IMG/VR virus record: IMGVR_UViG_3300020380_000001
Span: 186,001-250,000 of that record
Direction: 5' to 3' (one strand)
Length of the DNA stretch: 64,000 bases
Translations under genes and position numbers: made by a program
Shown here: piece by piece, positions 1,355 to 53,033 of the stretch
Position numbering within the stretch: the stretch's first letter is position 1
Layout of the letters: each line of letters starts with the position of its first letter
The notes under the pieces: generated by a model
Database searches by the model: none
The model's input: only the letters and a program-made list of their open reading frames with translations
Told to the model about the DNA's origin: nothing

Positions 1355-1648
1355 TTAATCAAACGGCCAGTTCGGGTCTCGTTCTGAGAATTCCATCATA
1401 GAGCCATGGAATTCAAGGTTAATTGAACCTACCTTAGCTTCATGGTAAAATATCCCTATCACCGAGTCGTCTTGGTTGTATATCACCTCAACACGGTGCC
1501 CGTCAATTTCTGACTGTTCGATGTCGTCGCTACTAACCTCCATAGTGAGGTCTTCCCAACGACTGTAATTAACTTTTTTGAAGTTTCCGGATTCAGTAAG
1601 TGGCTTACCTTCCATCACGTTCATAAATCCACGCATTGTATCTGACAT
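1355..1648 (-). CDS. protein with shared N-terminal peptide (putative internal head protein)
   Basis: Starts MSDTMRGFMNVMEG; CTAAATAC upstream at about 1674-1681. Confidence 0.8.
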   Translation of the reverse strand: MSDTMRGFMNVMEGKPLTESGNFKKVNYSRWEDLTMEVSSDDIEQSEIDGHRVEVIYNQDDSVIGIFYHEAKVGSINLEFHGSMMEFSERDPNWPFD

Positions 1649-2183: not shown

Positions 2184-2615
2184 TTAGATAACTGTCTTTG
2201 CGATTGTTGAAGCCGATCTACCGTCGTATAAACCTTCGTGATTAGCTTTAAGGTGCTTCATCACTTGGCCCATATTACAACCTGGGTTGGCTTCTACGAA
2301 TGAAACGATTGTGCCTCTCAGCTCATCTTCATTCATCTGTTTAGGAATGTACCCGTTTACCACATCAAGCTCAAGCTCATAAGCGGCAAGCTCGGATACC
2401 TGATTGCGCTCTTTCATGTTAGTGATAGTTTCATCAATTGACTTGACGAACTTTTTACACATCTGCACTACCTCTGCATCAGTCGATAGACGCTTACCAT
2501 CGTCTAAGCCGATGCGCGAAGCTTCAGAATACAACGTGGTTAAAATACTAACTCTGGCGCTGTCTCGTGCTTTCATAGCTGCCATACGGTCAGCCTTTAT
2601 CTTTTCTATCAACAT
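2184..2615 (-). CDS. GatB/YqeY domain protein
   Basis: MLIEKIKADRMAAMKARD...LLTTLYSE-like N-terminus and MGQVMKHLK...G.YDGRSAS C-terminus are typical of the YqeY family. Confidence 0.85.
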   Translation of the reverse strand: MLIEKIKADRMAAMKARDSARVSILTTLYSEASRIGLDDGKRLSTDAEVVQMCKKFVKSIDETITNMKERNQVSELAAYELELDVVNGYIPKQMNEDELRGTIVSFVEANPGCNMGQVMKHLKANHEGLYDGRSASTIAKTVI

Positions 2616-2632: not shown

Positions 2633-2863
2633 TTATGTGCCAGCCACCGTGTCGTGGTAAGCGGTGTCGAGTTTCCCGACAACTTTTACTTTCATAATAC
2701 GGTGCGGCGGATAGTGTTCAAAATAATCTTCGCCTTCGGGGTTTTCTGGATTGTGGCGATAGCCAGTTGCAACAATAGCGGAAGAGTGTTCGCGGGCTTT
2801 GCTTTCGTTCGACACGTTGTATTTGAATACTCGGCCGTCGTCGATGTAAACTTGGATTTCCAT
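2633..2863 (-). CDS. hypothetical protein
   Basis: Start at MEIQVYIDDGR, behind a GGAG RBS, within track ORF 2633..2911. Confidence 0.7.
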   Translation of the reverse strand: MEIQVYIDDGRVFKYNVSNESKAREHSSAIVATGYRHNPENPEGEDYFEHYPPHRIMKVKVVGKLDTAYHDTVAGT

Positions 2864-3322: not shown

Positions 3323-3397
3323 TGGTAGAGACACCGTGGGTCGAACACGGAGCACCAGCCTTATGAGGGCCGGGCGAATACCAGCCATTCTGTCTCT
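3323..3397 (-). tRNA. atypical tRNA with CAT anticodon (Met or Ile2)
   Basis: AGAGACA/TGTCTCT acceptor, CTCATAA loop, canonical T arm, CCA; no connector before the D stem; 6-bp anticodon stem. Confidence 0.8.
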
Positions 3398-3403
3398 AGT
3401 ATT

Positions 3404-3493
3404 TGGCGGAGAGTACAGGATTCGAACCTGTGCGCCCCTTTCGGGACTCTCGATTAGCAGTCGAGCGCGATAGACCTACTCTGCCAACTCTCC
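3404..3493 (-). tRNA. trnS: tRNA-Ser(GCT)
   Basis: CTCGA-CTGCTAA-TCGAG arm, long V arm, G73-CCA. Confidence 0.95.
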
Positions 3494-3500
3494 TTTAAAC

Positions 3501-3597
3501 TGGTACCAGGTACGGGATTCGAACCCGCAGGGTCATTATTACAGACCGCGACAAACACTTTAATGATGCCGCGCCTTCCCATTCGGCGCAACCTAGT
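3501..3597 (-). ncRNA. tRNA-like RNA with degenerate anticodon arm (apparent TTA anticodon)
   Basis: 7-bp acceptor, CGCC/GGCG D stem, canonical T arm, A-CCA; weak GGCAT/GTGTT stem around CATTAAA; extra GGTC/GACC arm. Confidence 0.65.
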
Positions 3598-3598
3598 A

Positions 3599-3692
3599 TG
3601 GCGGTGAGGGTGGGATTCGAACCCACGGCCGATGTTGCCACCGACGTTTGATTTCAAGTCAAGTGCAATAAACCAGACTCTGCCACCTCACC
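3599..3692 (-). tRNA. trnS: tRNA-Ser(TGA)
   Basis: TTGA-CTTGAAA-TCAA arm, long V arm, G73-CCA. Confidence 0.95.
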
Positions 3693-3700
3693 ATAAACCT

Positions 3701-3829
3701 TTACAAGCTGTTTATATCAGCTATTGCTTCTTTAAGAGATTCACGCGCACGCTTTTCGCGCTCGAGTTCTTCAACTCTTTTTTCTAGCTTTTTTACAAGC
3801 TTAACAAGATCACCGTGTGTCATTGTCAT
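3701..3829 (-). CDS. small coiled-coil protein (42 aa)
   Basis: Read by hand: MTMTHGDLVKLVKKLEKRVEELERE...; GAGGT RBS. Confidence 0.55.
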   Translation of the reverse strand: MTMTHGDLVKLVKKLEKRVEELEREKRARESLKEAIADINSL

Positions 3830-3848
3830 TGTGAACCTCTATTTAATA

Positions 3849-3886
3849 TGGAGCCGGCCCTGCGATACAACAGGGGATCACCCGGC
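3849..3886 (-). ncRNA. CCA-terminated minihelix (tRNA acceptor mimic or remnant)
   Basis: GCCGG/CCGGC plus CCCTG/CAGGG stems ending T-CCA, spaced like the neighbouring tRNA genes. Confidence 0.45.
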
Positions 3887-3895
3887 ATTGTAAAC

Positions 3896-3970
3896 TGGTA
3901 GGTTAGGTGAGTATCGAACTCACTACAACTGATTTGTAAGAACAGCGCCTCACCTGTCGGCCTCTAACCT
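3896..3970 (-). tRNA. trnV: tRNA-Val(TAC)
   Basis: AGGTTAG/CTAACCT acceptor, CTTACAA loop with one stem mismatch, CCA. Confidence 0.8.
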
Positions 3971-4392
3971 GATGATTTATATTCTCGTAAATACTTGTTT
4001 CTTTTCGAGATCTTTTTATACCTACTACCGGCACCTTTGGCACCCCATGTGTCGGTTTGCGTATGACAATTAGGGCAAAGTAATCTACAATTACTTGGTA
4101 AATTATTGTCACTATCGCCGTCTATGTGATCTAGCTGCAAAGTCAACGGCTTATTGTTCCACATAGTACCGAGGCCGCACTCACTGCATACCGAACCGTA
4201 TTTCTCGACCAAGTATCGTTTAATATTGCCGCCAAGGCCTGCTTCTATTTTGGGAACCTCTTTATTTTCCCAGTCCCATGACAACTTACACTCCAAATCA
4301 CAATACGTGTTGCCTTTTTTATGGGATATATCAGATCCGCAATACCTACAGTGCACTTCTTTCTTTTTTCTGGCACCGGGCCTGTACCTCAC
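3964..4392 (-). CDS. HNH (homing) endonuclease
   Basis: LQLDHIDGDSDNN...CRLLCPNCH motif plus CxxC Zn fingers. Confidence 0.9.
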   Translation of the reverse strand: MRYRPGARKKKEVHCRYCGSDISHKKGNTYCDLECKLSWDWENKEVPKIEAGLGGNIKRYLVEKYGSVCSECGLGTMWNNKPLTLQLDHIDGDSDNNLPSNCRLLCPNCHTQTDTWGAKGAGSRYKKISKRNKYLREYKSSG

Positions 4393-4517
4393 AGATTTGC
4401 CGCACGAGCTTTTATGCCCGATATACTTGTGCCTATTCGTGTAAAACTTCGCCGCAATCGCAAATATATTTTTTCATAAAAATATTTAGCAACTGCCTGA
4501 ATAATCACGTCAAATAA

Positions 4518-4543
4518 GCACTCTGCCTCTGAGCTACGGATCT
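4518..4543 (-). pseudogene. 5' fragment of a tRNA gene (acceptor 5' strand plus D arm)
   Basis: AGATCCG-TA-GCTC-AGAGGCA-GAGT with no anticodon arm, T arm or matching 3' strand nearby. Confidence 0.45.
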
Positions 4544-4550
4544 ATAATTC

Positions 4551-4847
4551 TTAAACTGCTTCGTGTGTAAACTTACACATAACTCGGTAGAATACCTGCG
4601 TTGCAGCATACTTGTCGATATTGTCAAGAAACATTTGGAAGAACTTCTTCTCTGTGTCACTATTGTCCATAGCAACTGCTCTATTCAAAGTAGCTACGTA
4701 TGTTTCCCTAGGAATCAACATAAAGTTTGCGTATTCTACACGACCCCATTCAATTAACTGCTTAAATGTTTCGGGGTCTAACTCTGCTTTAAGCTCGTTG
4801 ACGCGCTCTGTAAGCTCGTCTATGAAGTTATTCTTGTAATCTTCCAT
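4551..4847 (-). CDS. hypothetical protein
   Basis: 98-aa ORF; promoter-like TATAGA/TTGTAA upstream. Confidence 0.65.
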   Translation of the reverse strand: MEDYKNNFIDELTERVNELKAELDPETFKQLIEWGRVEYANFMLIPRETYVATLNRAVAMDNSDTEKKFFQMFLDNIDKYAATQVFYRVMCKFTHEAV

Positions 4848-4966
4848 AATGTTACTCGTTAAGTTTTAATCTATAATAGCACGTCTGTAGAAGCTTACAA
4901 GAATAATTTCTAATTTATTTAAAAATAAAAAAGTGCCAAAGTAATTACTACAATGACACCTTAAAA

Positions 4967-5039
4967 TGGTTGCGGGTACAGGTAACGATCCTGCCGGTCC
5001 TGGGTTATGAGCCCTGGCTGAACACCGTGTTCACCCGCG
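4967..5039 (-). tRNA. atypical initiator-like tRNA-Met(CAT)
   Basis: C1:A72 mismatch and three consecutive G-C pairs closing CTCATAA (fMet hallmarks); ATCGTTA T-loop; no connector. Confidence 0.8.
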
Positions 5040-5053
5040 ATAGATTTAAAAAT

Positions 5054-5132
5054 TGGTTGCAAGGGCGGGATTTGAACCCGCGTCCGCTAGGGTTATGAGC
5101 CCTGCCATCTGCCAGACTGATTGTACCTTACT
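5054..5132 (-). tRNA. initiator-like tRNA-Met(CAT)
   Basis: 1:72 mismatch, GGG-CTCATAA-CCC, canonical T arm, CCA. Confidence 0.85.
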
Positions 5133-5138
5133 ATTGTT

Positions 5139-5216
5139 TGGCACACCCTCCAGGATTCGAACCTGGGACCTTCGCGTTCGTAGCACGACATTCTAATCCA
5201 ACTGAACTAAGGGTGC
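5139..5216 (-). tRNA. trnR: tRNA-Arg(ACG)
   Basis: CGTG-CTACGAA-CGCG arm; CCA. Confidence 0.95.
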
Positions 5217-5225
5217 AATAAACTT

Positions 5226-5720
5226 TTAATCATTTTCGTCAAGAAGGATATCTGTTATAATCTCTTCAAATGCGTGGTAGTCTTCCATACCATCCCAATT
5301 GCCTTCGTTATAAAAAATATCCGTTGTTAGTGATACTATCTCGCGGCGACGGTTACGCGGTAATGCCTTCCATTCATCTATCGAAGTAACGCCTTCTCTG
5401 CGCAAGGTTGACAAAATAGCAACAGAAAAACTGTCGTCATTGTTGCCTGCCTTATTAGTATCACTTAGCACCGAATCTATCATATCAGCAAACATTGCTG
5501 AATCCGGCATCGCTTCATCGTCAATCCAACCATGATTGTAAAACAAGTCACTAGCTAGATCACCGTAGCGATATTTTTCGCGTCTTGATAACGCGTTCCA
5601 GTCAGCTAGCGTGTTGATATTATCACGAGCTAACATTTGTAACACACCCGACTTAACAGCGGCATCGCTGCCGCTAGTGTCTTCCATCAAGTTCATAAAT
5701 TTGCGCATCTGATCTGACAT
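5226..5720 (-). CDS. acidic protein with shared N-terminal peptide; internal duplication
   Basis: Starts MSDQMRKFMNLMED; two copies of an L.R..I.T...W.AL.R..R....L..D.FY..G.W unit. Confidence 0.8.
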   Translation of the reverse strand: MSDQMRKFMNLMEDTSGSDAAVKSGVLQMLARDNINTLADWNALSRREKYRYGDLASDLFYNHGWIDDEAMPDSAMFADMIDSVLSDTNKAGNNDDSFSVAILSTLRREGVTSIDEWKALPRNRRREIVSLTTDIFYNEGNWDGMEDYHAFEEIITDILLDEND

Positions 5721-5729
5721 AAATGTTCC

Positions 5730-6209
5730 TTATTTGATCTGCAATATGCTTGCCGCCTGTCGTAGCGCGACTTCGCGCATCGCTTGCGACTTGTATCTTT
5801 CTTGCATAAAACTCAAAAGTTGATTTATGCCATCTTCAAAATCATCATACGCAGAGTCAGGGTCACCAACACCATAAGCACCGATGATAACACCGTTAGC
5901 AAAGTATTCACCGTCTTCTGCTATTTCAAGAACCTCGGCTTCTTCTTTAGCTTGAGCAGCGTTAATAACCTTAGTAGCAAACTCGTACGGAGCCATAGCG
6001 CCATATGATAAGAGTTGCTTGCCTACTTTTTGCGTATAAGACTCTACTGAACCTTGTTCTATACCGTATATTAACGCTGACGCTTTATCGTAAAACTGAT
6101 CAACTGATATAGCATCAGAGTTTTCCGTAATAGCTGTGTCAATATTTTGATTCAATGGCCCGGACTGACCTTCCATTAAATTCATTATTTTGCGCATCTG
6201 ATCTGACAC
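5730..6209 (-). CDS. protein with shared N-terminal peptide
   Basis: Starts MSDQMRKIMNLMEG; GGAG RBS; GTAAATAAG upstream. Confidence 0.8.
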   Translation of the reverse strand: MSDQMRKIMNLMEGQSGPLNQNIDTAITENSDAISVDQFYDKASALIYGIEQGSVESYTQKVGKQLLSYGAMAPYEFATKVINAAQAKEEAEVLEIAEDGEYFANGVIIGAYGVGDPDSAYDDFEDGINQLLSFMQERYKSQAMREVALRQAASILQIK

Positions 6210-6256
6210 TTAATATCTCCCATAAACTATTGTATAGCTTATTTACGCATTTAAGT

Positions 6257-6333
6257 TGGAAGGGGTGGCAGGATTCGAACCTGCGAGTACCGGGATCAAA
6301 GCCCGGGGCCTTAGACCGCTTGGCGACACCCCT
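6257..6333 (-). tRNA. trnQ: tRNA-Gln(TTG)
   Basis: CCGGG-CTTTGAT-CCCGG arm; CCA. Confidence 0.93.
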
Positions 6334-6339
6334 ACAAAC

Positions 6340-6415
6340 TGGTCTCTCGAGCAGGATTTGAACCTGCGACACGTAGTCCCAAACCACGCATGTTACCAGA
6401 CTACACTATCGAGAG
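6340..6415 (-). tRNA. trnP: tRNA-Pro(TGG)
   Basis: CGTGG-TTTGGGA-CTACG arm; CCA. Confidence 0.93.
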
Positions 6416-6424
6416 AATCAAAAC

Positions 6425-6502
6425 TGGTTGTCCCTGCTGGATTTGAACCAGCGATCAGCGATTATCAGTCGCACGCTTTAGGCCAGGCTAAGCTAAGGGA
6501 CA
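6425..6502 (-). tRNA. trnI: tRNA-Ile(GAT)
   Basis: GCGA-CTGATAA-TCGC arm; CCA. Confidence 0.93.
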
Positions 6503-6510
6503 ATAAACTT

Positions 6511-7353
6511 TTATCGTTTACGTAGAGTAATCTCAACACCTTTAATTGCATTGAGTTCATCTACGATTTGCTGAGGATCTACCTCTATGTCAGTACGACG
6601 TCTAGGCACATACTCGATGTCTCTACCTATTAATTGAATACGTTTAGGCAAAACACGCAATATAAACGGACCACCAACCTGTAGATTTCTATTAGTTAGG
6701 TCATAGTAATAACCGAGCATTTTGAGCGCTTTCGCTACTTCGTCCGATACTACCTGTTTTTTCACCTGTTTTGATGGTTTGTCCGAAACAATATACTCTT
6801 CTGCGGGTGTTTCGTCGTCGTACTCAAGTGCTAGCTCAACCACATTTTTTACGTGTTTCTTTGCAATAAACAAAACACCGTCGTCCATGTCATGCTCTAC
6901 GTCATCTAATTCAAGATCCGAAACAAGCCCAGCGATTTCACTTGCTGTCCATCCAGGCATAGTCAGTTGTACCATTTTACGCTTGGACTCTCTGACTGTC
7001 TTTTTCGGTCCGTTGCCTTGACTAGCATAATACTTGCTGAACTCTTCGTCAGCATATTCGGCCATTTGCTCAATGAAATCCCAGCGAGGGCCATCTTCAG
7101 CATATGCCAAATCCGGAACTATTTTTGTCAGCACTTCGTTTTCAACTGCTGACTCATCATCATCTAGAATTGCACGGGTCAAGTCATGTAAGCGATCTCT
7201 GTCGTCACCAAACAACTCGTTACCAGCGTCATGTGCCATACCATCCAATTTAGACATCAAGCGGCCGAAAACATGTCTTTTTGCTTTCTTGTGTCGCTCG
7301 TCACCAGTTGGTGACTCCATCAAATTCATTAATTCGCGCATTTTTTCTGACAT
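6511..7353 (-). CDS. acidic protein with shared N-terminal peptide
   Basis: Starts MSEKMRELMNLMES; GTAAATAAG upstream; upstream 30 bp resembles that of 5730..6209. Confidence 0.8.
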   Translation of the reverse strand: MSEKMRELMNLMESPTGDERHKKAKRHVFGRLMSKLDGMAHDAGNELFGDDRDRLHDLTRAILDDDESAVENEVLTKIVPDLAYAEDGPRWDFIEQMAEYADEEFSKYYASQGNGPKKTVRESKRKMVQLTMPGWTASEIAGLVSDLELDDVEHDMDDGVLFIAKKHVKNVVELALEYDDETPAEEYIVSDKPSKQVKKQVVSDEVAKALKMLGYYYDLTNRNLQVGGPFILRVLPKRIQLIGRDIEYVPRRRTDIEVDPQQIVDELNAIKGVEITLRKR

Positions 7354-7400
7354 TACTGTCTCCTATAAACTATGTCATATAGCTTATTTACGCAGGTAAT

Positions 7401-7500
7401 TGGTGGACCCCCGCGGACTTGCACCACACGCCTCAATACTACCCTCACTTTATTTCTTTTAAGACACCGGATTTACAGTCCGGGGTGAGGAAAGGGATCC
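7401..7500 (-). ncRNA. rearranged tRNA-Tyr(GTA)-like RNA lacking a D arm
   Basis: GGATCCC/GGGGTCC acceptor plus A-CCA; perfect CCGGA-CTGTAAA-TCCGG arm; CCTCAC/GTGAGG helix replaces the D arm. Confidence 0.7.
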
Positions 7501-7523
7501 TTAATCTGTTACAAAAACTGTTT

Positions 7524-7547
7524 TGGAAGGGGTCGTTACCAACCCCT
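7524..7547 (-). ncRNA. CCA-terminated microhelix
   Basis: AGGGGTT-GGTAAC-GACCCCT-T-CCA; no U-tract on either strand. Confidence 0.35.
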
Positions 7548-7561
7548 CAATAAAACAATTC

Positions 7562-8053
7562 TTAAAAGTGCGGGTTTTTGTCATTGTGAACACCGCGTGC
7601 AAGCGTCCAAATGCCTGCTCGTTTATATGTAGCAGTGTTGCCTTTACGCCAAAATACTGTACCGTCGCTTGTTGTAACTTTCTTCATAGTTTTAGAAATC
7701 TTGACAATTGTACCGCACGGATACCAGTCACCGTTAAAACCGTAACTTACTACGTCACCAATCTTTGGCATGCGCTCTACTGCATGATCATCGTGACGCT
7801 CTACAGCAATATAAGTATCACCGGTTTCTTCACTCAACTGCTCAGCGATTCGTTGCGCAATAAAGCTAGAGCCACAATAATTAAGGGTAACAAACTGGGC
7901 CATTATTTCTTTGTAGAAGTTCGGCGCTTTTTCTTCATCGCCACCTGCCATCTTTAGCGCAGTTTCACGGACTTCTTCAGCCCATGCTTCAGTGTAGTCT
8001 TCGTTACGATCAATAATGTTACCAGTTTTTAAATCTACTCTATAATGTATCAT
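7562..8053 (-). CDS. hypothetical early protein
   Basis: 163-aa ORF behind a repeated promoter cassette. Confidence 0.75.
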   Translation of the reverse strand: MIHYRVDLKTGNIIDRNEDYTEAWAEEVRETALKMAGGDEEKAPNFYKEIMAQFVTLNYCGSSFIAQRIAEQLSEETGDTYIAVERHDDHAVERMPKIGDVVSYGFNGDWYPCGTIVKISKTMKKVTTSDGTVFWRKGNTATYKRAGIWTLARGVHNDKNPHF

Positions 8054-8141
8054 AATTTGCTACCTTGTGTTTGTTTAATCAACCTACACAGACATAATAG
8101 CAGAATGACATTCAAGTACAAGACTTGTTTGAAAATAATTT
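8051..8141 (-). repeat. promoter-leader cassette, copy 1
   Basis: About 90 bp, near-identical to 9506..9600 and similar to 24741..24843 (+). Confidence 0.85.
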
Positions 8142-8153
8142 AAAATATATTTT

Positions 8154-8239
8154 GCACAGCGGACGGGTTTCGAACCCGCAATGCGATATTCGCGCTGCCT
8201 TGAAAGGGCAGTGACTTTACCAGTTTGTCCACCGCTGTG
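8154..8239 (-). tRNA. trnE: tRNA-Glu(TTC) with long variable arm, no encoded CCA
   Basis: CTGCC-CTTTCAA-GGCAG arm; 15-nt V region CGCGAATATCGCATT. Confidence 0.85.
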
Positions 8240-8310
8240 GAAAATATACTTATTCTGGGCAAAAATAAAGCGACTTAATAGCCGCTTTATCATGGCATTA
8301 AGGTTTGTTA

Positions 8311-9021
8311 CTATGCGCGTCTACGAACAGCGATTCCTAGTACTGCTAAAAGCGCAAGTGCTAATGAACCTGGCTCCGGTACCGCTGTTACACCACCTAA
8401 CTGTAAATCATATGAACGCTGCATTAGCCCAGTATCAGGCGATGCAATATTACCGCGCACTTGGATGGCTCCGATGTTTGTGAAGTCAGTGTTACTAAAT
8501 TCACGCGAAAGGAAAAACGCATCACGTCCTGGGCGATTAACACCGGGTATCGGTAACTCAACAGTTTCAGCAGTTCCGTTAGGACCTGACCAAAACGTTA
8601 CGTCAAACCAAGCATTCAAATCTGATTCAATAATCGTTGTAATAAATTTTATCGGGTTGCCAATTGCAGTTAAGTCAAGTCCGCCTAAGCCGAATGGATT
8701 AATTGCATTTGATCCGTCAACGCCGTCCCATTGAATGGTAAACATTGATTCGTTACCTGCGCCTGAACTAAAGAAAAAGTTATCAGCCGCTACGTTTACA
8801 GAGGCGCCTTGGTTGAACTCGTCAACAACGCTTGTTATTTCTAAATCTCGTTCTCCGCCGATCATAGAACCCAATACAGAGCTAAACAAAGTTTGGCCTT
8901 GCATTACTACCATTGGTCCTTGGTCATCAGAAAAGTCATCAATCGTTATCATACCTGCGTTGGCTGAGGTAGTAATACCCATGGCCAATACAGCGCCTAA
9001 CAATAGAGATTTCATTTTCAT
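8311..9021 (-). CDS. PEP-CTERM sorting-domain surface protein
   Basis: Sec signal peptide ending SANA; C-terminal VPEPGS + hydrophobic TM + RRRA. Confidence 0.93.
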   Translation of the reverse strand: MKMKSLLLGAVLAMGITTSANAGMITIDDFSDDQGPMVVMQGQTLFSSVLGSMIGGERDLEITSVVDEFNQGASVNVAADNFFFSSGAGNESMFTIQWDGVDGSNAINPFGLGGLDLTAIGNPIKFITTIIESDLNAWFDVTFWSGPNGTAETVELPIPGVNRPGRDAFFLSREFSNTDFTNIGAIQVRGNIASPDTGLMQRSYDLQLGGVTAVPEPGSLALALLAVLGIAVRRRA

Positions 9022-9068
9022 ATAAATGATCCTTTTAAAGTTATCCAGTTGCTTTTAGCAACACATAC

Positions 9069-9096
9069 ACTATACATTACTTTTTTACAAGGTCAA
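9069..9096 (-). promoter_or_regulatory. sigma70-like promoter for the PEP-CTERM gene
   Basis: TTGACC-16-TATAGT. Confidence 0.65.
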
Positions 9097-9229
9097 GAAG
9101 TTTCTTTAATTCGTAAAACAGTATTTAATAGGCATGTATGAATAACACACGATTTTGACCTCTTATTCACAAAAAGCCAAAATCGTGTGTTATGCGATGA
9201 CCATAATGATCACCGCGCTACACTACTAA

Positions 9230-9508
9230 TTATTTTTGCAAATCGTAATATTCGTACTCATAACGACCACCTTCGATCTCGCCCCACTGCTCCCAGCCGT
9301 TCTTTGAAACATGCATTGTGTTCGCGGCGTGCTCAGGAGTAATGATAAAACGTACATCAAAACCAGCAGCGTGTGCCTCAGCTTTTACACTTTCAAAGTC
9401 TTCAGCGCTGTGTGCAGCACCGTGCCATACGTTTTCAGTTGCGCCTACCATTTCTTCAGCGCTGTTCCAGTTCGCTACTACAAAACTTGTTGCTTTACGA
9501 TTGTTCAT
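9230..9508 (-). CDS. hypothetical early protein
   Basis: 92-aa ORF behind the repeated cassette. Confidence 0.7.
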   Translation of the reverse strand: MNNRKATSFVVANWNSAEEMVGATENVWHGAAHSAEDFESVKAEAHAAGFDVRFIITPEHAANTMHVSKNGWEQWGEIEGGRYEYEYYDLQK

Positions 9509-9600
9509 AATTTGCTACCTTGTGTTTGTTTAATCAACCTACACAGATATAATAGCAAAATGACATCCAAACACAAGGCCTTTTTGAAAATAATTTCAAA
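9506..9600 (-). repeat. promoter-leader cassette, copy 2
   Basis: See 8051..8141. Confidence 0.85.
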
Positions 9601-9685
9601 AATATTTCGTTGCTCTGGGTACTTATATTAGTCGCTTTTAAACTCATGTGTTTATCATCTCGCAAAATGGCAAACATATAAGTTT

Positions 9686-9770
9686 TGGTGGGTTGGGTGG
9701 GATTCGAACCCACGAAGCATTACGCGCTAGATTAAAAGTCTAGTATCTTTAACCACTCGATCACCAACCC
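9686..9770 (-). tRNA. trnK: tRNA-Lys(TTT) on a class II (Tyr-like) body
   Basis: CTAGA-CTTTTAA-TCTAG arm; 13-nt V region CGCGTAATGCTTC; A73-CCA. Confidence 0.88.
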
Positions 9771-9803
9771 ATATCGTTTTCGTACTTTCGTCTTTCGTTT
9801 CAT
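9732..9803 (-). CDS. Lys/Arg-rich 23-aa leader ORF running into tRNA-Lys
   Basis: AGGAGA RBS + MKRKTKVRKRYGLVIEWLKILDF; the stop is the TAA in the anticodon loop. Confidence 0.4.
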   Translation of the reverse strand: MKRKTKVRKRYGLVIEWLKILDF

Positions 9804-9838
9804 TTTCTTTCTCCTGTTAATTATACGAGTGTAGTATG

Positions 9839-9912
9839 CAGGGACGACGGGACTTGAACCCGCGCTCTCCGCAGTGACAGTGCGATATTTTAACCAACTA
9901 AACTACGCCCCT
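9839..9912 (-). tRNA. trnD: tRNA-Asp(GTC), no encoded CCA, flanked by a 13-bp inverted repeat
   Basis: CGCA-CTGTCAC-TGCG arm; flanks 9827..9839 and 9913..9925 are perfectly complementary. Confidence 0.88.
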
Positions 9913-9936
9913 GCATACTACACTCATATCTTTATT

Positions 9937-10488
9937 TTAATATAACGAGTCTTCTACGATTTCAAACAAGTCATTATACATAGCTGAAGCCATTGCATTA
10001 AACTCGTCGTAAGCGCCATCAGCAAAAAAATCACTATACAACATATGTGCATCGCCTTTATTGTCACGTACTGACTTTGACACGTACTGTAACGAGCGAG
10101 GCTTAAAGTGCGACATCTTTTGCAATCTAGGTTCCGGCGGGAAAGCACGCATTTCAATATCAATTGAGTCATCGCCTTCCTGATAAAACACTAACATTTT
10201 AAGAACTGTATTCGCGTTCCAGTTAGTTTTTATCGGCTTAAACTTGATAGTGAAGCCTTCTTTACCAGCTTGAGGAACATCGTCGCCTTGTAGTACGTCG
10301 ACACCCATATCAGCAATCTCATCTAACCAAGTGTTCATACCACTAACGATTTGTTCACGGAACTTGCTGTATTGTTCTCTGAATCCGGCAGCGTCGCTTT
10401 CCATTAATCTGAAAACCTTTTCCATACCGGAATTTTGTCCTGTTTTTTTCCCTTCAAGGATTTTGTTAACTCGATTTCGGTCAGCCAT
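9937..10488 (-). CDS. protein with variant shared N-terminal peptide
   Basis: MADRNRVNKILEG...MEKVFRLMES; ATAAATAG upstream. Confidence 0.75.
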   Translation of the reverse strand: MADRNRVNKILEGKKTGQNSGMEKVFRLMESDAAGFREQYSKFREQIVSGMNTWLDEIADMGVDVLQGDDVPQAGKEGFTIKFKPIKTNWNANTVLKMLVFYQEGDDSIDIEMRAFPPEPRLQKMSHFKPRSLQYVSKSVRDNKGDAHMLYSDFFADGAYDEFNAMASAMYNDLFEIVEDSLY

Positions 10489-10566
10489 GTTTAGTATTCT
10501 CCTGTTATCCGTTATCGTTACTATTTATCCAATAACTTAAGAGCGTACAAAACCAATAACCAAAAT

Positions 10567-10658
10567 TGGCGGACGGTGCTGGATTTGAACCAGCGCGGGG
10601 GATATTCTCCACCTCCGGGTTAACAGCCCGGCGCAATCGGCCACTATGCGAACCGCCC
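10567..10658 (-). tRNA. trnN: tRNA-Asn(GTT) on a class II (Ser-like) body
   Basis: CCGGG-CTGTTAA-CCCGG arm; 20-nt V region; G73-CCA; G3:U70 pair. Confidence 0.88.
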
Positions 10659-10674
10659 ATAAACTTTTAAAGTT

Positions 10675-10750
10675 TGGTGGAGTATACCAGACTCGAACTG
10701 GTCAGGCTATCATCTTGCAAGGATGATCCGGGTGCCCATGCCCATACCCC
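10675..10750 (-). tRNA. trnA: tRNA-Ala(TGC), atypical D region
   Basis: G3:U70; ATCATC-CTTGCAA-GATGAT 6-bp arm; CCA. Confidence 0.88.
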
Positions 10751-10758
10751 ATTAAACT

Positions 10759-10833
10759 TGGTGCCGAGTGGTGGTACCGCCCCACCCTCTAAGGATTTTC
10801 AATCCATCGCTAATCTGTCTCAGCTAACTCGGC
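10759..10833 (-). tRNA. trnF: tRNA-Phe(GAA), non-canonical T and D loops
   Basis: GCCGAGT/ACTCGGC acceptor; TTGAAAA loop; T-loop GGCGGTA. Confidence 0.85.
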
Positions 10834-13010: not shown

Positions 13011-13496
13011 TCACCAAACACGCGTACCATACGAAAACCGGCTTCGTAGATACTGTACTATCAAGCGGGGCGCAGGTATAAAAGAGTTAACTGGGATGAT
13101 TTTCATCGTATCTGATTGCGGAATATCCCAAAAATCCTGATAGTTGTTTTGACCATCAAAATATATTGAACGTTCAGAGCCTACTATCCGTAAATGAAAG
13201 CTATGCACTCCCACAAACTCATAACTATCAACCGAAGTGCGATACTTTTTTGTGTCGCGTGCTAGTATTTTTATACGATGTAAGCCTTCCAGCACAGCAC
13301 GTACTGACTGGGACAGGCCTGCAGACGATATTTCCACGTTGCCCATTATTACTTGCTTAAGTAACTCTTCATCATCTGTGCAATAGTAGTACCCTGAATT
13401 TGGTATAAGGCATTCAGAATTTACGATATGTATATTATCGTATGTTACTTTGACCTTTTTGAACAATAGCGCGTCGGATGGTATCGAAAGATCCAT
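13011..13496 (-). CDS. hypothetical protein
   Basis: Track ORF 13011..13589; start uncertain because it overlaps the nucleotidyltransferase. Confidence 0.55.
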   Translation of the reverse strand: MDLSIPSDALLFKKVKVTYDNIHIVNSECLIPNSGYYYCTDDEELLKQVIMGNVEISSAGLSQSVRAVLEGLHRIKILARDTKKYRTSVDSYEFVGVHSFHLRIVGSERSIYFDGQNNYQDFWDIPQSDTMKIIPVNSFIPAPRLIVQYLRSRFSYGTRVW

Positions 13497-36858: not shown

Positions 36859-38946
36859 TTACTTGATCTCTATGCCCGTAATAGAATCATTTGCTTCCAT
36901 ACGGAAACGAACATAAATCTTGTTATCCGTTGCGTTCGTAGATGTCTCAGTACCGAATGTGGCTGTGAATGTACCGGATGATCCAGTTGCTACTGAACCT
37001 AGTGCGCACCCTACTGTGGGAACACCAGCACCGCCGTATAGTTGGAACATATCCCACCAACCAGCAACGCCAGGTATCTGTACTTCAAGGCCACTGTATG
37101 TGCCTGTGACTTGAATATCAAATAACGATACTGCCGAGCGTCTAAACTCAACTGTAAAATATTGCACGGCTGCCTTACCGGAGTAGTCAGGTCCAGCTGG
37201 TAGGTATCCACTTGTATAATCAGTGTTGTCGTGACGCATAACGCCACCTACTACCGTTGCCTCGTCTGGTGCTACTAACGTGGTAGAATCCCATGCAGAA
37301 AAATCACTAGTATTTACACGATATCCATTTGTACTTGCGCCAGAAGGAATGCTGCCTAAACTAGACCTAACCGGTATAGTGAGCTCTTTAACCGGTGATG
37401 TCGGGTTACCACTCATCACTAATAATGTCGCAGGAATATTAGTCTTAGATGAGCTATTATCCGGGTTATGCGATACTAGGCCGAGGCTACTTGTTGTGTG
37501 CACGTTGCCACCGATAGTGAATACCGCACCAGTAAAGGATGCGCTTGCCAAGTCTTTATCAAATACCGCAGGAAGACCGTTGGAGCCTGGACTAATTGAC
37601 ACACTAGATCCAGTACCGTTAGTTGAGCTTATAACGAATACGCCAGATGACTTATATGCATTAGTTGCTAGGTTAGTACCCGTGCCGTCTATAGTAATAG
37701 TCGTGCCACTTGCGTAGTGCGGTATGCCAGAAGAATGATCTAAGACAGAGTTAGATACACTATAAGAGTCAATTGTTGCTGTAGTAGCAGGCGCAGCGGT
37801 GTCGTATAACACAGAAGCAGTGTTAGTTTCACCCGACTCATTGTGTGACATCTTAGCCTGGTTCAAGCCCACTGGCATATTAACACCGCGTATACGCGCA
37901 CTTAAGTCTTGGAAGAATCCAGGGGTCTCAACCGGAAAGTCGTTGTTGGCTGTGATGACAAGCGAAGCATCAGTACCACTATTGTCTGTACCGTCTAACG
38001 CAATAGATCCATCTACTACACCGTTTATTACAGCATCAAGAACGCCGCTATTGCCAGAGCCAAAGCCACTAACAACGTTAGTCTGCGGAATAGACGTGGT
38101 GCGTGATGATATATCATCACCAGCAGCAGGACCCGCACCAGTATTGTCGATATAATTGTTCGCATATTTTAAGCCGCTTGTATTACCAAACGACAGTGTC
38201 TTAGTACTGAGTAGCGCAGGCGCATCAGGAAGTAACAAACCTACAATTTCATTTAAGCTGTCAAATGCGTCTACTATCTTACTAGTACTTAGTAAGCCTT
38301 GTACCGCCGGAGTCTTGCCGCCAGCTACTCGCGGATCATCAAAATCACCGTCTTGCGGTAATGCACCAAATTCAGGCACAGTTAAGCCGCCACCGGAGCC
38401 ACTCGGCAAGTCTATAGCGATCCATGCATCAGTAGCCGCGTCATACGCTAACACCTGGCCATCAGTTGCTGCGGGGAATTCTGCGGTAGACTGATCTACT
38501 GCGATCCATGTTGAATTAGTTGCATCCCAAGCAAGCACTTGGCCGTCAGTAACGTTGGTCGGCATTTGTACAGAGCTGTCAGGTACTGCTACCCATTGTG
38601 TACCGTCCCACTTGATGATGTCATTTACGTTTACATTAGTAGACGAAAGTTGTACAGAGCTGTCAGGTACTGCTACCCATTGTGTACCGTCCCACTTGAT
38701 GATGTCATTTACGTTTACGCCGTCAGGTACATTACTACTGCCGCCGCCTGATCCAGACACTGTCAGTAATACAAGGTTGTTACTCGCATCAACACCAACG
38801 ACTTGGTTTGGTGTAGCCGTGTCTTTACCTAGTATGTTTAACTCACGTATGCCTACCGCGCTTTCTTGGATGTCTTCGGAGGCAACACCACTGTCCTTAA
38901 TTACTTCGGAGGTTACTCTTGTTAATCCTCGTCTAGCCATAGTCAT
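36859..38946 (-). CDS. tail fibre/virion protein
   Basis: GQVLAWD/KWDGTQW repeats; internal tandem duplication. Confidence 0.75.
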   Translation of the reverse strand: MTMARRGLTRVTSEVIKDSGVASEDIQESAVGIRELNILGKDTATPNQVVGVDASNNLVLLTVSGSGGGSSNVPDGVNVNDIIKWDGTQWVAVPDSSVQLSSTNVNVNDIIKWDGTQWVAVPDSSVQMPTNVTDGQVLAWDATNSTWIAVDQSTAEFPAATDGQVLAYDAATDAWIAIDLPSGSGGGLTVPEFGALPQDGDFDDPRVAGGKTPAVQGLLSTSKIVDAFDSLNEIVGLLLPDAPALLSTKTLSFGNTSGLKYANNYIDNTGAGPAAGDDISSRTTSIPQTNVVSGFGSGNSGVLDAVINGVVDGSIALDGTDNSGTDASLVITANNDFPVETPGFFQDLSARIRGVNMPVGLNQAKMSHNESGETNTASVLYDTAAPATTATIDSYSVSNSVLDHSSGIPHYASGTTITIDGTGTNLATNAYKSSGVFVISSTNGTGSSVSISPGSNGLPAVFDKDLASASFTGAVFTIGGNVHTTSSLGLVSHNPDNSSSKTNIPATLLVMSGNPTSPVKELTIPVRSSLGSIPSGASTNGYRVNTSDFSAWDSTTLVAPDEATVVGGVMRHDNTDYTSGYLPAGPDYSGKAAVQYFTVEFRRSAVSLFDIQVTGTYSGLEVQIPGVAGWWDMFQLYGGAGVPTVGCALGSVATGSSGTFTATFGTETSTNATDNKIYVRFRMEANDSITGIEIK
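38566..38718. repeat. perfect 69-bp direct repeat, 84-bp period
   Basis: 38566..38634 = 38650..38718; encodes VNVNDIIKWDGTQWVAVPDSSVQ twice. Confidence 0.95.
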
Positions 38947-49831: not shown

Positions 49832-50624
49832 ATTGAAGCCTTAGCATTGCGATACGGTTTGGGTCAACCTTCTTTTCATTATTACCTATACGATTGCGTA
49901 TGTGTAAGTCAATATCATTTCGAGTGAAATACGCGTTATTGCCGAACTCATTATCGTCAGCGTCAAACACTGATGTTTCGATTGACGGGGATTCCAAAAA
50001 CAACGGATAGCTTTCTACATTACCTACGTTACGTTTTAAATGCATATACGCGATACCTGTTTGCGACAATATTTTAATAGGAAACCTGGACATACTATAC
50101 GACACACGAATTACCGATTTTGAATCAGAACTAGTATGGCCAGGCACAGCGGCTGATCGAATAGATAACTTAAATGGCTTCTTTGCTAGGTACGAGTTGG
50201 ATACTGTTACCGTAAAGCCGTTGTCGCTCTCTGAATTATAAAAAGTGCTTATTGTCAATGTAAGCTCGTGTATGAACACTGATATCGACAGACTTTCTGC
50301 CGTGAATGGATCCCGTATGAGTCGTATATGACTAGAGTTCAAACCAGTCGAGTGCGCTAATTCAGCATAAGACATCGCTTCTACGACTTTGCGGGCTTTG
50401 TTGGCTATCGATACATGTGCGCGTCTAGTTCGCTTAAACTTGCCTTTAGTTGTAGTCAGATACAACCTGTTCTTTAACACACACTCAAGCAGATCTTTAG
50501 TACTTTTCATATACCGCTTATAGCCAGGCGTATTATCGTATACTCTACGATTCCTAATAGGCTCATATACTCGTTGCGTGAACCCATCTATATCCAATAT
50601 GTCCATGTTAATATTGCTCCCCAA
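49824..50624 (-). CDS. C-terminal-tag array member 5
   Basis: Ends VDPNRIAMLRLQYA. Confidence 0.8.
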   Translation of the reverse strand: MGSNINMDILDIDGFTQRVYEPIRNRRVYDNTPGYKRYMKSTKDLLECVLKNRLYLTTTKGKFKRTRRAHVSIANKARKVVEAMSYAELAHSTGLNSSHIRLIRDPFTAESLSISVFIHELTLTISTFYNSESDNGFTVTVSNSYLAKKPFKLSIRSAAVPGHTSSDSKSVIRVSYSMSRFPIKILSQTGIAYMHLKRNVGNVESYPLFLESPSIETSVFDADDNEFGNNAYFTRNDIDLHIRNRIGNNEKKVDPNRIAMLRLQYA

Positions 50625-51510
50625 GTACGAACAATGCTGCGGTAGACCGTTTTAGTATCGGCCCATGCATCTCTTCAACCAGTTTGGCTTCTTCTAAATA
50701 CTGACGTAACGTCATTGTTATATCAAACCCGTAGCGCCAGCGTCTTAGGTTTAGTTCTAATTTGTTAGTGCCCGATACTTGCACATATGTAGAAACTACA
50801 GGCACAAACGGTCTGAATAACTCAAGTGATTCGTACATCCAATAATCCGCGGTACACATTGCCTTATCAGTAACAGTACATGACATAAGACGGGTGTCTG
50901 TGTTTTTATTTGCCACAAATACTATCTCACCGATATTAGACGATAGACGAACCTTTCTTTCAGCTGAAGATACACCGTCCCAGTTAGACCATAATCCAGT
51001 GCGTGCGGTTGCTGTGACGTACCGGTGCTCCATATAAAACTCGTATGAAGCTCTAGACCAGCGCCTATAGAATACCGCACTTGGGCCGTATAACTTTGTC
51101 TTAGTGAGTTTGCTATGCTTACTAAAGGTTATTTGCACCGTGTACACAACGTCGTTATATTCAATAGTAACACCGTAACACTCACTGGTATAATCACCGT
51201 CCACGATACATACGTTAGACGGATCGACAGTATGCATCCGCTTACGCGTCAACGTTACTTTTACGTTAGTGCCAGGCAAACGACACAAGTAAACCGGATT
51301 AAAATCACCTGACTTTAAAATAGCAGGGCCAATTTCTTCATCAACGAACGACATAAAATCGCCCATCAACTTATGCATTGTTTTACCTACACCGACAACG
51401 CCTATATCCTCCCGTGGACCAAATCTAAACGACACCTTCCGTCTAGTTTCAACACGTTCTTTGCGCAGGCGCATTAAGTGCGTCAGTAGTTTGTTTCCTG
51501 GGTTACGCAT
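50608..51510 (-). CDS. C-terminal-tag array member 4
   Basis: Ends LKRSTAALFVLGEQY (weak match). Confidence 0.75.
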   Translation of the reverse strand: MRNPGNKLLTHLMRLRKERVETRRKVSFRFGPREDIGVVGVGKTMHKLMGDFMSFVDEEIGPAILKSGDFNPVYLCRLPGTNVKVTLTRKRMHTVDPSNVCIVDGDYTSECYGVTIEYNDVVYTVQITFSKHSKLTKTKLYGPSAVFYRRWSRASYEFYMEHRYVTATARTGLWSNWDGVSSAERKVRLSSNIGEIVFVANKNTDTRLMSCTVTDKAMCTADYWMYESLELFRPFVPVVSTYVQVSGTNKLELNLRRWRYGFDITMTLRQYLEEAKLVEEMHGPILKRSTAALFVLGEQY

Positions 51511-52375
51511 AATTCAACCTCATTAAGGCAAACTGTTCTTCTGTTAACCGATCACCAATACACCACTCGGCCACTGTTTCGCAAGAACCGCTTAGTGTCG
51601 GCAGGGACTCGTAATCAGCGAGAAACACGTTTTCTGCTATTACGGTGCTACTGGTATCGTAATACTTGTCGAAACTAGCAAACATCATGGTAGACTCTTC
51701 GTTGTTGAGAACTTTAGTCCCAGGATGGTAACGACACGAAATTGCATTAGGACCCGGGTTAGCGTAGTCAAACCGTCTCATATACACTATCCGTGTCCCA
51801 TGTCTATATGCAAGTGAATGTCCGCGCACCCAGATCGCACAAAGCCCTCTTCTCGAGGAGGCATACGCTATATGAATAGGACGCTCGATAGTCATGTCTT
51901 TGTTTGGGCTGCTCATGTTTATAGTCAACATGTAGTCGCTTCTAGGCTGGTGCTTATAAAACCGTAACGTGAAGTCAACGTGAACATTACCAGCGACCAC
52001 GATAGTTACTCGACGAGAAAACCTGTCCTGCCAAGTTACTTTGGGATCATATTCTGCTACTTCTTCAAGTTCGACTTTGGGTATGAAATCCACATTGTAT
52101 AGCTTAGACGCAATATAAGTAGATAACAATGAGCTGCCGACTAGACGAAACACTGCGCGTTCAACCGGGCGACCATCATCATCCATTATACGGTTAATAC
52201 GTTTGGCTATTGCTAGATGAGTCATTTTGCAATCGTTGGAAAGTGCATCGTTTATAGCTTTTATGTTGGCGACAACATCATACCCAAACACGTAGGAATC
52301 CTTATAATTTTCCATCACCGTACTCCATTTTAAGTCGTAGACGTTCTTCGGCGGATACGCGGGATAGTACGTCAT
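51503..52375 (-). CDS. C-terminal-tag array member 3
   Basis: Ends LTEEQFALMRLNYA; true start may be MENYKDS at 52318. Confidence 0.8.
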   Translation of the reverse strand: MTYYPAYPPKNVYDLKWSTVMENYKDSYVFGYDVVANIKAINDALSNDCKMTHLAIAKRINRIMDDDGRPVERAVFRLVGSSLLSTYIASKLYNVDFIPKVELEEVAEYDPKVTWQDRFSRRVTIVVAGNVHVDFTLRFYKHQPRSDYMLTINMSSPNKDMTIERPIHIAYASSRRGLCAIWVRGHSLAYRHGTRIVYMRRFDYANPGPNAISCRYHPGTKVLNNEESTMMFASFDKYYDTSSTVIAENVFLADYESLPTLSGSCETVAEWCIGDRLTEEQFALMRLNYA

Positions 52376-53033
52376 TAAACTCTACAGGGATATCATTTAA
52401 CATCCACTGAGCCCTTAGCACTTGTTTCACAGCACTAAAGTCATCCACATCGTATTGGAAAGTAACAGCGGCAGGGCGCTCCGTTGAATGAATGACAAAA
52501 TCATTAATTATTTGATCTGCATTCATATTAACCGGATCTAACCCTGTATTACTGTAATACCCGTGAGTCATAACACACGGAGTGTGTCCGGATACAATTT
52601 TTTTCGTTCCGTCTATATGTTCCATAGCAACACTCATTGACGTTGACGAGTTATAAACATACTTGACCGCGTCCGTCGTACCAACGCCTTCAACAATAAT
52701 CAAAGTAGGCGGCCAGTTTCCTTGACGAGACTCTTCAAGAGTGCGAGTGGCGATCGCTGCCATTGTTTCACGAGTGTATTGCGTGTGAAATGTCATACCA
52801 ATACTAGTACGCGAGGTTGGACTCGTAAACATTACGCTAGTCACTAACTTGCGATTGGCGGTTAGCACAATACCATATTGTCGTTTGATTTCGGCCGCAC
52901 GGCCGTTTATATAAGTGGCTGCGCATTCGTGCCTAGACGGTATGCCGATTATGGTTGTCATTGTAGTCATCTTAAAGAAAAGGTCTTCAAGATTTCTTGG
53001 CAATGTGGATAAGCTGGAGATTGTATCTAGCAT
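52302..53033 (-). CDS. C-terminal-tag array member 2
   Basis: Ends VSAEERLRLKMEYGDGKL. Confidence 0.8.
   Translation of the reverse strand: MLDTISSLSTLPRNLEDLFFKMTTMTTIIGIPSRHECAATYINGRAAEIKRQYGIVLTANRKLVTSVMFTSPTSRTSIGMTFHTQYTRETMAAIATRTLEESRQGNWPPTLIIVEGVGTTDAVKYVYNSSTSMSVAMEHIDGTKKIVSGHTPCVMTHGYYSNTGLDPVNMNADQIINDFVIHSTERPAAVTFQYDVDDFSAVKQVLRAQWMLNDIPVEFNDVLSRVSAEERLRLKMEYGDGKL

Follow-up and report, generated by a model that had tools for sequence, protein, structure and literature searches.

Predicted compact-core tRNAs without an acceptor–D-stem connector in phage tRNA clusters

The tRNA cluster of a 306-kb phage (IMG/VR record IMGVR_UViG_3300020380_000001, of which we analysed a 64,000-nucleotide window, positions 186,001 to 250,000) holds about 27 tRNAs within about 24 kb of the genome, together with an HNH endonuclease ORF. 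Three of these genes, a tRNA-Ala(UGC), a CAU tRNA (elongator Met or Ile2-type) and an initiator-like CAU tRNA, depart from the standard cloverleaf in the D/anticodon half (Table 1). In each, a 7-bp acceptor stem runs directly into a 3–5-bp D stem, followed by a 2-nt linker, a six-position anticodon stem, a variable loop of 4–6 nt and a T arm with 5-bp stem and 7-nt loop. The 7-nt anticodon loop with U33, the discriminator and the encoded CCA are standard, as is the T loop of the Ala and CAU tRNAs. A paired G occupies the eighth position in all three, such that U8, and with it the s4U8 site, is lost.

Table 1 Features of the three compact-core tRNA genes and their neighbours (window coordinates).
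Feature	Positions	Strand	Description
tRNA-Ala(UGC)	10675–10750	minus	G3.U70, A73, CCA encoded; 6-nt variable loop
Ala D arm	10730–10743	minus	Stem GGG (10743–10741) / CCC (10732–10730), directly after acceptor base 7 (10744); 8-nt loop with GGG
Ala linker and anticodon arm	10709–10729	minus	Linker GG (10729–10728); 6-bp stem ATCATC/GATGAT (10727–10722 / 10714–10709); loop 10721–10715; anticodon 10719–10717
CAU tRNA (elongator Met or Ile2-type)	3323–3397	minus	CCA encoded; 4-nt variable loop
CAU D arm	3376–3390	minus	Stem GAAT (3390–3387) / ATTC (3379–3376), possible fifth G.U pair, directly after acceptor base 7 (3391); 7-nt loop
CAU linker and anticodon arm	3355–3375	minus	Linker GC (3375–3374); 6-bp stem CCGGCC/GGCTGG, one G.U (3373–3368 / 3360–3355); loop 3367–3361; anticodon 3365–3363
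Initiator-like CAU tRNA	4967–5039	minus	C1.A72 mismatch; three G-C pairs next to the anticodon loop; T loop ATCGTTA; CCA encoded; 4-nt variable loop
Initiator-like D arm	5020–5032	minus	Stem GAAC (5032–5029) / GTTC (5023–5020), directly after acceptor base 7 (5033); 5-nt loop, or 5-bp stem (fifth pair A-U) with 3-nt loop
Initiator-like linker and anticodon arm	4999–5019	minus	Linker AG (5019–5018); six-position stem CCAGGG/CCCAGG with an A.A mismatch (5017–5012 / 5004–4999); loop 5011–5005; anticodon 5009–5007
Second, more canonical initiator-like tRNA	5057–5132		Adjacent to the initiator-like tRNA
HNH endonuclease ORF	3964–4392		Inside the tRNA cluster

The original prediction, that three sequence-distinct tRNAs share a connector-less fold with a 6-bp anticodon stem is confirmed, and its suggestion of a real structural class supported, with one correction: the initiator-like stem is five pairs plus an A.A mismatch at the third position from the top, rather than six perfect pairs. 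Minimum-energy folds from RNAfold place the D stem against the acceptor stem in all three. A descriptor scan (7-bp acceptor, 0–1 nt, D stem of 3–5 bp, 1–3 nt, 6-bp anticodon stem, 3–6-nt variable loop and a T arm) finds exactly these three in the 306.5-kb genome, against 0.2 hits per mononucleotide-shuffled genome. The Rfam tRNA model RF00005 (gathering threshold 29 bits) misses all three, even at E ≤ 10 in a 7.8-kb search. ARAGORN places the anticodons of the CAU tRNA and tRNA-Ala at positions 33 and 32 (34–37 for most of its other calls in this genome) and does not call the initiator-like gene.

To address whether the fold is conserved, we aligned 43 tRNA-Ala homologues by MAFFT without structural guidance. 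RNAalifold predicts the same arrangement: a 7-bp acceptor, no gap, a D stem, 2 nt and a 6-bp anticodon stem. Of all cells, 96.6% are paired, with a covariation score of 0.704 (at most 0.126 for slid partners, and 0/500 shuffles); sliding partners by 1–3 columns drops pairing to 36–50%. All-against-all mutual information ranks exactly these helices on top, with strong compensatory changes in the D stem and in the outermost anticodon-stem pair. The latter (columns 25:43; GC 21, AU 10, CG 7, UA 4, UG 1) has the highest corrected mutual information in the alignment. The D stem becomes GCT/AGC, GCGC/GCGC, GTAA/TTAC and others in the same register. A seventh anticodon-stem pair, between linker and variable loop, holds in 29 of 43 sequences and not in the window's copy; an eighth does not hold. 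In 50 of 67 unique pattern-retrieved tRNA-Ala genes, only 19–22 nt separate acceptor stem and anticodon loop, too few for a canonical D arm. None of 16 homologous non-canonical tRNA-Ala genes is hit by RF00005, while 124 other tRNAs in the same loci are.

For the CAU tRNA at 3323–3397, the D stem is GGTC/GACC, CCTC/GAGG and GGGG/CCTC in the same register in three further sequences (L122, L111 and L119, respectively); in the 95% relative, two changes fall in the D loop and the innermost anticodon-stem C-G pair becomes U.G. A model built from Ala sequences only (R1) scores tRNA-Ala at 73.4 bits and ranks this CAU tRNA second at 38.5 bits, above every canonical tRNA of the region. R1 scores the initiator-like tRNA at 22.9 bits (E 1.7e-4). 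The latter has no independent covariation, its only homologue (in L009/L012) being 96% identical, and has an unusual T loop. Two IMG/VR pattern scans for its homologues returned only the 95% relative, the other hits being canonical eukaryote-type initiators of giant viruses. Near and distant BLAST of both CAU tRNAs against cultured phages found nothing.

The architecture extends beyond this phage. We find 70 strict members in 1.12 Mb of phage loci and 30 in 0.6 Mb of bacterial arrays, but none in 0.73 Mb holding 318 mostly giant-virus tRNAs and none in shuffles. It carries Arg, Met, Gln and Trp anticodons in other phage tRNA clusters and bacterial arrays, and the Arg group gives the same RNAalifold fold. 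It occurs in the cultured phages phiCbK, CcrColossus, Brevundimonas vB_BpoS, Atu_ph07 and Mwe-JY26; the phiCbK-type tRNA-Ala has an A.A or A.C mismatch at the same stem position as the initiator-like tRNA. The non-canonical tRNA-Ala gene is kept across many Lentzea species. The bacterial copies lie in arrays of 5–35 tRNA genes per 8 kb, and HNH endonuclease genes such as that in the window's cluster are reported for L-arrays and phages (PMC8421152), although that work does not describe this fold. The plasmid collection has no match to the tRNA-Ala, the experimentally studied Anabaena pCC7120delta array has a canonical tRNA-Ala and gives no direct evidence of function, and R1 found no strong hit in 150 evenly drawn Alphaproteobacteria, albeit with few candidates scored per genome.

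Identity elements are retained. G3.U70 is present in 42 of 43 Ala homologues, and the initiator-like tRNA has the 1:72 mismatch, three consecutive G-C pairs and CAU anticodon of bacterial initiators. Among 100 strict members, GG is kept in the D loop in 99, a UUCRA T loop in 88 and an encoded CCA in 76; the Arg members keep GG followed by A in the D loop. In Brevundimonas phage Papperlapapp, the non-canonical tRNA-Ala sits in a Leu-Leu-Leu-His-Ala-Ser-Ser-Ser block, where Caulobacter phage C1 has a canonical tRNA-Ala. The window's tRNA-Ala is the only one in its phage, for which we found no AlaRS, MetRS, CCA-adding enzyme or RtcB; no tRNA repair genes were found, although the T4 RNA-ligase search was uninformative, its control giving no signal.

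The closest known architecture is tRNAPyl of Methanomethylophilus alvus (PylRS class lacking the N-terminal domain), which has no connector, a 4-nt D loop and a 6-bp anticodon stem interrupted by an unpaired A, and is active in cell-free translation (PMC7609411). The tRNAs described here carry UGC and CAU anticodons (elsewhere Arg, Gln and Trp) rather than CUA, with Ala and initiator identity marks, and neighbour other tRNAs and small ORFs without pyl-type Pfam domains. A 3-nt variable loop, as in tRNAPyl, is found in 11 of 100 class members (52 of 100 have 4 nt). The comparison with mammalian mt-tRNASer(UCN) made in the original prediction is correct but not the nearest: this tRNA, which also keeps G18, G19 and T-Psi-C, and tRNAPyl of Methanosarcina barkeri and Desulfitobacterium hafniense share a shortened connector, small D loop and 6-bp anticodon stem, but keep one connector nucleotide and a 3-nt variable loop (PMC7609411). 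Our class has no connector (by definition of the strict set) and two nucleotides between D and anticodon stems in 94 of 100 strict members. Canonical tRNA-Ala, tRNA-Met and tRNA-fMet share the 7/5 acceptor/T helix but have U8-N9, a single nucleotide 26 and a 5-bp anticodon stem. The allo-tRNAs and (8/4) tRNASer/tRNAHis of alphaproteobacterial phages (Mukai et al. 2017, PMC5389517) are likewise non-canonical cloverleaves in phage tRNA clusters; there, the acceptor/T split changes (8/4 or 9/3) and variable arms are long. Nor do our tRNAs have the 8/5 or 9/4 configuration, 6-bp D stem or long variable arm of the tRNASec/allo-tRNA group. We found no paper describing this class, although most subscription journals lay outside our search and prior description cannot be excluded.

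We conclude that the three loci are genuine tRNA genes built on a compact-core cloverleaf, belonging to a horizontally mobile class carried by phage clusters and bacterial long tRNA arrays for several amino acids. They are most likely working tRNAs, although their expression, charging and use in translation are inferred. The parts read by RNase P, EF-Tu and AlaRS are inferred to be unchanged, and the D-loop/T-loop elbow and a D/anticodon arm of similar length to be kept; the molecules can thus be expected to fold into an L shape, be charged by host AlaRS or MetRS (the initiator-like one then formylated) and decode GCA/GCN and AUG on host ribosomes, although no 3D model shows how a zero-nucleotide junction is accommodated alongside a 2-nt D/anticodon linker. 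That the altered core lets these tRNAs escape host tRNA-directed nucleases or modification enzymes is a weaker inference; only 3 of about 27 tRNAs in this phage have the fold, so a general escape function is not evident. A broader scenario, in which a mobile pool of compact-core tRNAs supplies replacements unrecognized by such enzymes, with the M. alvus type of tRNAPyl an offshoot of or convergent with this pool, is not excluded but remains doubtful.

Of the alternatives, a non-translational role (for example, as decoys for host tRNA-cleaving defence nucleases or toxins, or as regulatory RNAs) survives best but is unlikely. tRNAs are frequent targets of bacterial immune nucleases, phages carry tRNAs that neutralize them (PMC11464382, PMC12409363) and non-canonical roles have been suggested for array tRNAs (PMC8421152). 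However, the full sets of identity elements, encoded CCA and syntenic replacement of a canonical tRNA-Ala fit decoding better, and a decoy would be expected to mimic the host tRNA core rather than depart from it. Decay into pseudogenes is less likely still: despite the failure of RF00005 and, for the initiator-like gene, its mismatch, T loop, lack of distant homologues and more canonical neighbour, compensatory changes keep every helix across phages of Alphaproteobacteria, Cyanobacteria and Actinomycetota arrays, anticodon loops, G3.U70, A73 and CCA are kept, and the few differences from the 95% relative are in loops or keep pairs. That these are canonical tRNAs with a weak, shifted D stem and a Watson–Crick 26:44 pair, as ARAGORN draws them (connector GAA and a 3-pair G.U-rich D stem for the CAU tRNA, whose 23 nt before the anticodon loop are just enough for a minimal canonical arm; a 1-nt connector and 2-bp stem for Ala), is very improbable, given that homologues fix the D stem at position 8 and most family members are too short for 2+4+7+4+1+5.

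If these genes work, the standard arrangement has a widespread natural exception in phages and bacterial arrays. The practical cost is already visible: the phiCbK genome paper used tRNAscan-SE and Rfam, yet phiCbK, Karma, Rogue and many others match the Brevundimonas phage gene with identical BLAST scores and leave it unannotated. Phage tRNA censuses and codon-usage arguments are therefore biased. The class also offers natural tRNA bodies that bacterial ribosomes probably accept but that differ in the core, of interest for orthogonal translation, and gives a concrete handle on how phage tRNAs might avoid tRNA-targeting defences.

The phage genome is complete (306.5 kb, with direct terminal repeats), and a tail-region protein is 32-37% identical to proteins of giant siphophages of Alphaproteobacteria: the Caulobacter phiCbK/Bertelyvirus group, Brevundimonas vB_BpoS phages, Sinorhizobium Phosso and Agrobacterium Atu_ph07. 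About 27 tRNA genes lie on the minus strand between genome positions of about 173 and 197 kb; all those with a clear 3' end encode CCA. The tRNA-Glu(UUC), tRNA-Lys(UUU) and tRNA-Asn(GUU) genes of the window have long variable regions, unusual for these amino acids; all score well with Rfam RF00005. Three further tRNAs are found by Rfam but not by ARAGORN.

Coordinates of features in the window (bases 186001-250000 of the genome) and in the loci compared with it.
Locus	Position	Strand	Feature	Remarks
Window	36859-38946		Tail-region protein
Window	3323-3397	-	CAU tRNA	Compact fold
Window	4967-5039	-	Initiator-like CAU tRNA	Compact fold
Window	4983-4989		T loop ATCGTTA	In the initiator-like tRNA
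Window	3501-3597	-	'tRNA-Stop(tta)' (ARAGORN)	97 nt, long variable arm, A33 in the loop
L009 (95%-identical relative)	13123-13217		Same gene as window 3501-3597
Window	8154-8238	-	tRNA-Glu(UUC)	The three genes Glu, Lys and Asn are 85-92 nt
Window	9686-9770	-	tRNA-Lys(UUU)
Window	10567-10658	-	tRNA-Asn(GUU)
Window	10762-10833	-	tRNA-Phe(GAA)	Rfam only; T loop GGCGGTA, lacks TTC
Window	3899-3970	-	tRNA-Val(UAC)	Rfam only
Window	5057-5132	-	Second initiator-like tRNA	Rfam only; A1.A72 mismatch
Window	3964-4392	-	HNH endonuclease ORF	Inside the tRNA cluster, abutting tRNA-Val
Window	2184-2615	-	YqeY-like protein	Between tRNAs
Window	8311-9021	-	Protein with C-terminal PEP-CTERM motif	Between tRNAs
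L384 (phiCbK JX100813.1, about 50607-50675)	1418-1486		tRNA-like gene, unannotated	Next to the compact tRNA-Ala
L255 (Nostoc PCC 7120 pCC7120delta)	50001-55414		Anabaena L-array
L028 (phage tRNA cluster)	2222-2306	-	tRNA-Sec	Rfam hit reaching the gathering score (47 bits)
L027 (phage tRNA cluster)	2726-2843	+	Skipping-rope RNA	Rfam hit reaching the gathering score (43.7 bits)

Read on the minus strand, the CAU tRNA, the initiator-like tRNA and tRNA-Ala each have a 7-bp acceptor stem whose 5' strand runs straight into a D stem (GAAT/ATTC, GAAC/GTTC and GGG/CCC, respectively). Two unpaired nucleotides follow (GC, AG, GG), then a six-position anticodon stem, a 7-nt loop with U33, a variable loop (4, 4 and 6 nt) and a 5-bp T stem. 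The original prediction, that all three lack a connector and possess a 6-bp anticodon stem, is accurate with one correction: the initiator-like stem CCAGGG/CCCAGG has an A.A mismatch. tRNA-Ala has G3.U70 and A73, whereas the initiator-like tRNA is so named for its C1.A72 and three G-C pairs next to the loop. ARAGORN calls two of the three, with anticodons at positions 33 and 32, and forces weak, shifted D stems; RNAfold gives the abutting D stem as the minimum-energy fold for all three, and Rfam's tRNA model reports none of them even at E<=10. A descriptor for this architecture finds exactly these three genes in the whole genome, against 0.2 hits per shuffled genome.

To test the fold comparatively, we first used BLAST with tRNA-Ala, finding homologues in Agrobacterium phage Atu_ph07 and Microcystis phage Mwe-JY26, where the D stem reads GCT/AGC or GGG/CCC in the same register and the three outer anticodon-stem pairs covary. 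An IMG/VR pattern scan constraining only the inner anticodon arm and the T loop returned 67 unique parsable tRNA-Ala genes, of which 50 have just 19-22 nt between acceptor stem and anticodon loop (a canonical arm needs at least 23). Forty-three sequences were aligned by MAFFT without structural guidance, from which RNAalifold predicts a 7-bp acceptor, a directly abutting 3-bp D stem, a 2-nt linker, a 6-bp anticodon stem and the T arm. In this alignment 96.6% of cells pair, with a covariation score of 0.704; slid partners score at most 0.126, and 0 of 500 shuffles reach the observed value. The 43 sequences were picked by the descriptor, which inflates the percentage paired, but the variety of pair types, the mutual-information ranking and the length argument do not depend on that choice. 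D-stem pairs read CG 21 / UA 13 / GC 8 and AU 14 / GC 14 / UA 11, and the sixth, outermost anticodon-stem pair (GC 21 / AU 10 / CG 7 / UA 4) has the highest corrected mutual information of all column pairs. Unpaired columns also covary: the first D-loop base with the last variable-loop base (columns 12:49; C:G 21, A:A 11), akin to a Levitt pair, and a D-loop base with a T-loop base (columns 13:60; T:T 23, A:G 13); these may be tertiary contact or subfamily history.

For the CAU tRNA, homologues from three jumbo-phage contigs (L122, L111 and L119) have GGTC/GACC, CCTC/GAGG and GGGG/CCTC directly after the acceptor stem, all with a 2-nt linker and a 6-bp stem. A model built from Ala sequences only (R1, whose E-values are rough) scores this tRNA at 38.5 bits, above all canonical tRNAs of the region, which need an insertion at the junction. 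The initiator-like tRNA rests on weaker evidence. Only the 95% relative has a copy, with three differences (in the D loop, in the linker, and a U.G to C-G change in the T stem), and support for the initiator-like fold is therefore thermodynamic and by analogy; an A.A or A.C mismatch at the same stem position is conserved in the phiCbK-type tRNA-Ala. The T loop of the initiator-like tRNA (A54 with U58, the reverse of the usual T54/A58) recurs in an unannotated His-like compact tRNA beside the tRNA-Ala of phiCbK and in a canonical-length initiator of another phage contig (L024); other compact CAU tRNAs have ATCGA[TC]A, as eukaryotic initiators do. In the 95%-identical relative, the gene called as tRNA-Stop(tta) differs in exactly the three anticodon bases (TTA to CGG) plus two other substitutions, and it lacks the CCA; an IMG/VR scan for the scaffold gave only chance hits.

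We next asked whether the fold forms a class, defining strict members as having no connector and at most 22 nt before the anticodon loop. There are 70 unique strict members in 1.12 Mb of phage loci and 30 in 0.6 Mb of bacterial array loci, but none in 0.73 Mb holding 318 mostly giant-virus tRNAs and none in shuffles. The anticodons include Ala, CAU, five Arg anticodons, Gln and Trp. Of the 100, 94 have a 2-nt linker, 99 have GG in the D loop, 88 have a UUCRA T loop and 76 encode CCA. The Arg group gives the same RNAalifold fold and keeps GG followed by A in the D loop. None (0 of 16) of the non-canonical tRNA-Ala genes reaches Rfam's threshold, while 124 neighbouring tRNAs do.

In GTDB genomes the same tRNA-Ala lies in arrays of 5-35 tRNA genes, with hosts including many Lentzea species and other Pseudonocardiales, Bradyrhizobium, Agrobacterium, Xanthobacteraceae and others. 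It was not found in 150 evenly drawn Alphaproteobacteria (with few candidates scored per genome), so it looks accessory and mobile. Planctomycetota arrays of up to 35 genes per 8 kb (loci L134-L213, for example L135, L138 and L141) carry a tRNA-Ala(UGC) with C8-A9, a 6-nt D loop and an apparent 6-bp anticodon stem, alongside compact CAU and Trp tRNAs with anticodon positions 30-32. The Anabaena L-array has 75-78-nt tRNA-Leu genes without the long variable arm expected of tRNA-Leu. Among cultured phages, five Brevundimonas vB_BpoS phages and about 30 Caulobacter phage records carry the compact tRNA-Ala. In phiCbK it lies unannotated between tRNA-Leu and tRNA-Ser, with an acceptor stem identical to the window's; the neighbouring tRNA-like gene has a 1-nt connector, a GCGC/GCGC D stem and a loop readable as a GUG (His) anticodon. 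The phiCbK paper reports His only in Colossus. CcrColossus has a canonical and a compact tRNA-Ala side by side, and in Brevundimonas phage Papperlapapp the compact gene occupies the slot of the canonical tRNA-Ala of Caulobacter phage C1, within a conserved Leu-Leu-Leu-His-Ala-Ser-Ser-Ser block.

The architecture is closest to Methanomethylophilus alvus tRNAPyl, then to mt-tRNASer(UCN) and other tRNAPyl. It departs from tRNAPyl in anticodon, gene context and variable loop, from tRNASec and allo-tRNA in being 7/5, and it does not fit the canonical model. Non-canonical 8/4 tRNAs are already known in alphaproteobacterial phage clusters (PMC5389517), but we found no description of the present class in the incomplete literature accessible to us.

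The acceptor/T helix, discriminator and CCA are unchanged, and these are the parts established as being read by RNase P, EF-Tu and AlaRS (through G3.U70). The D-loop GG can still form the elbow, the T loop having the usual UUCGA in the Ala and CAU tRNAs but not in the initiator-like one. The sixth anticodon-stem pair and the 2-nt linker plausibly make up for the missing 8, 9 and 26. Loss of U8, and hence of the s4U8 site, follows from the sequence; escape from tRNA-directed nucleases or modification enzymes is only an inference, motivated by reports that tRNAs are common immune targets and that phage tRNAs counter them. The compact tRNA-Ala is the phage's only tRNA-Ala, and no AlaRS, MetRS or CCA-adding enzyme was found in the phage, so host enzymes must charge these tRNAs, their function being inferred here without expression or charging evidence. 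M. alvus tRNAPyl, with no connector, a 4-nt D loop and a 6-bp anticodon stem, works in cell-free translation (PMC7609411), and such a core is therefore compatible with ribosomes.
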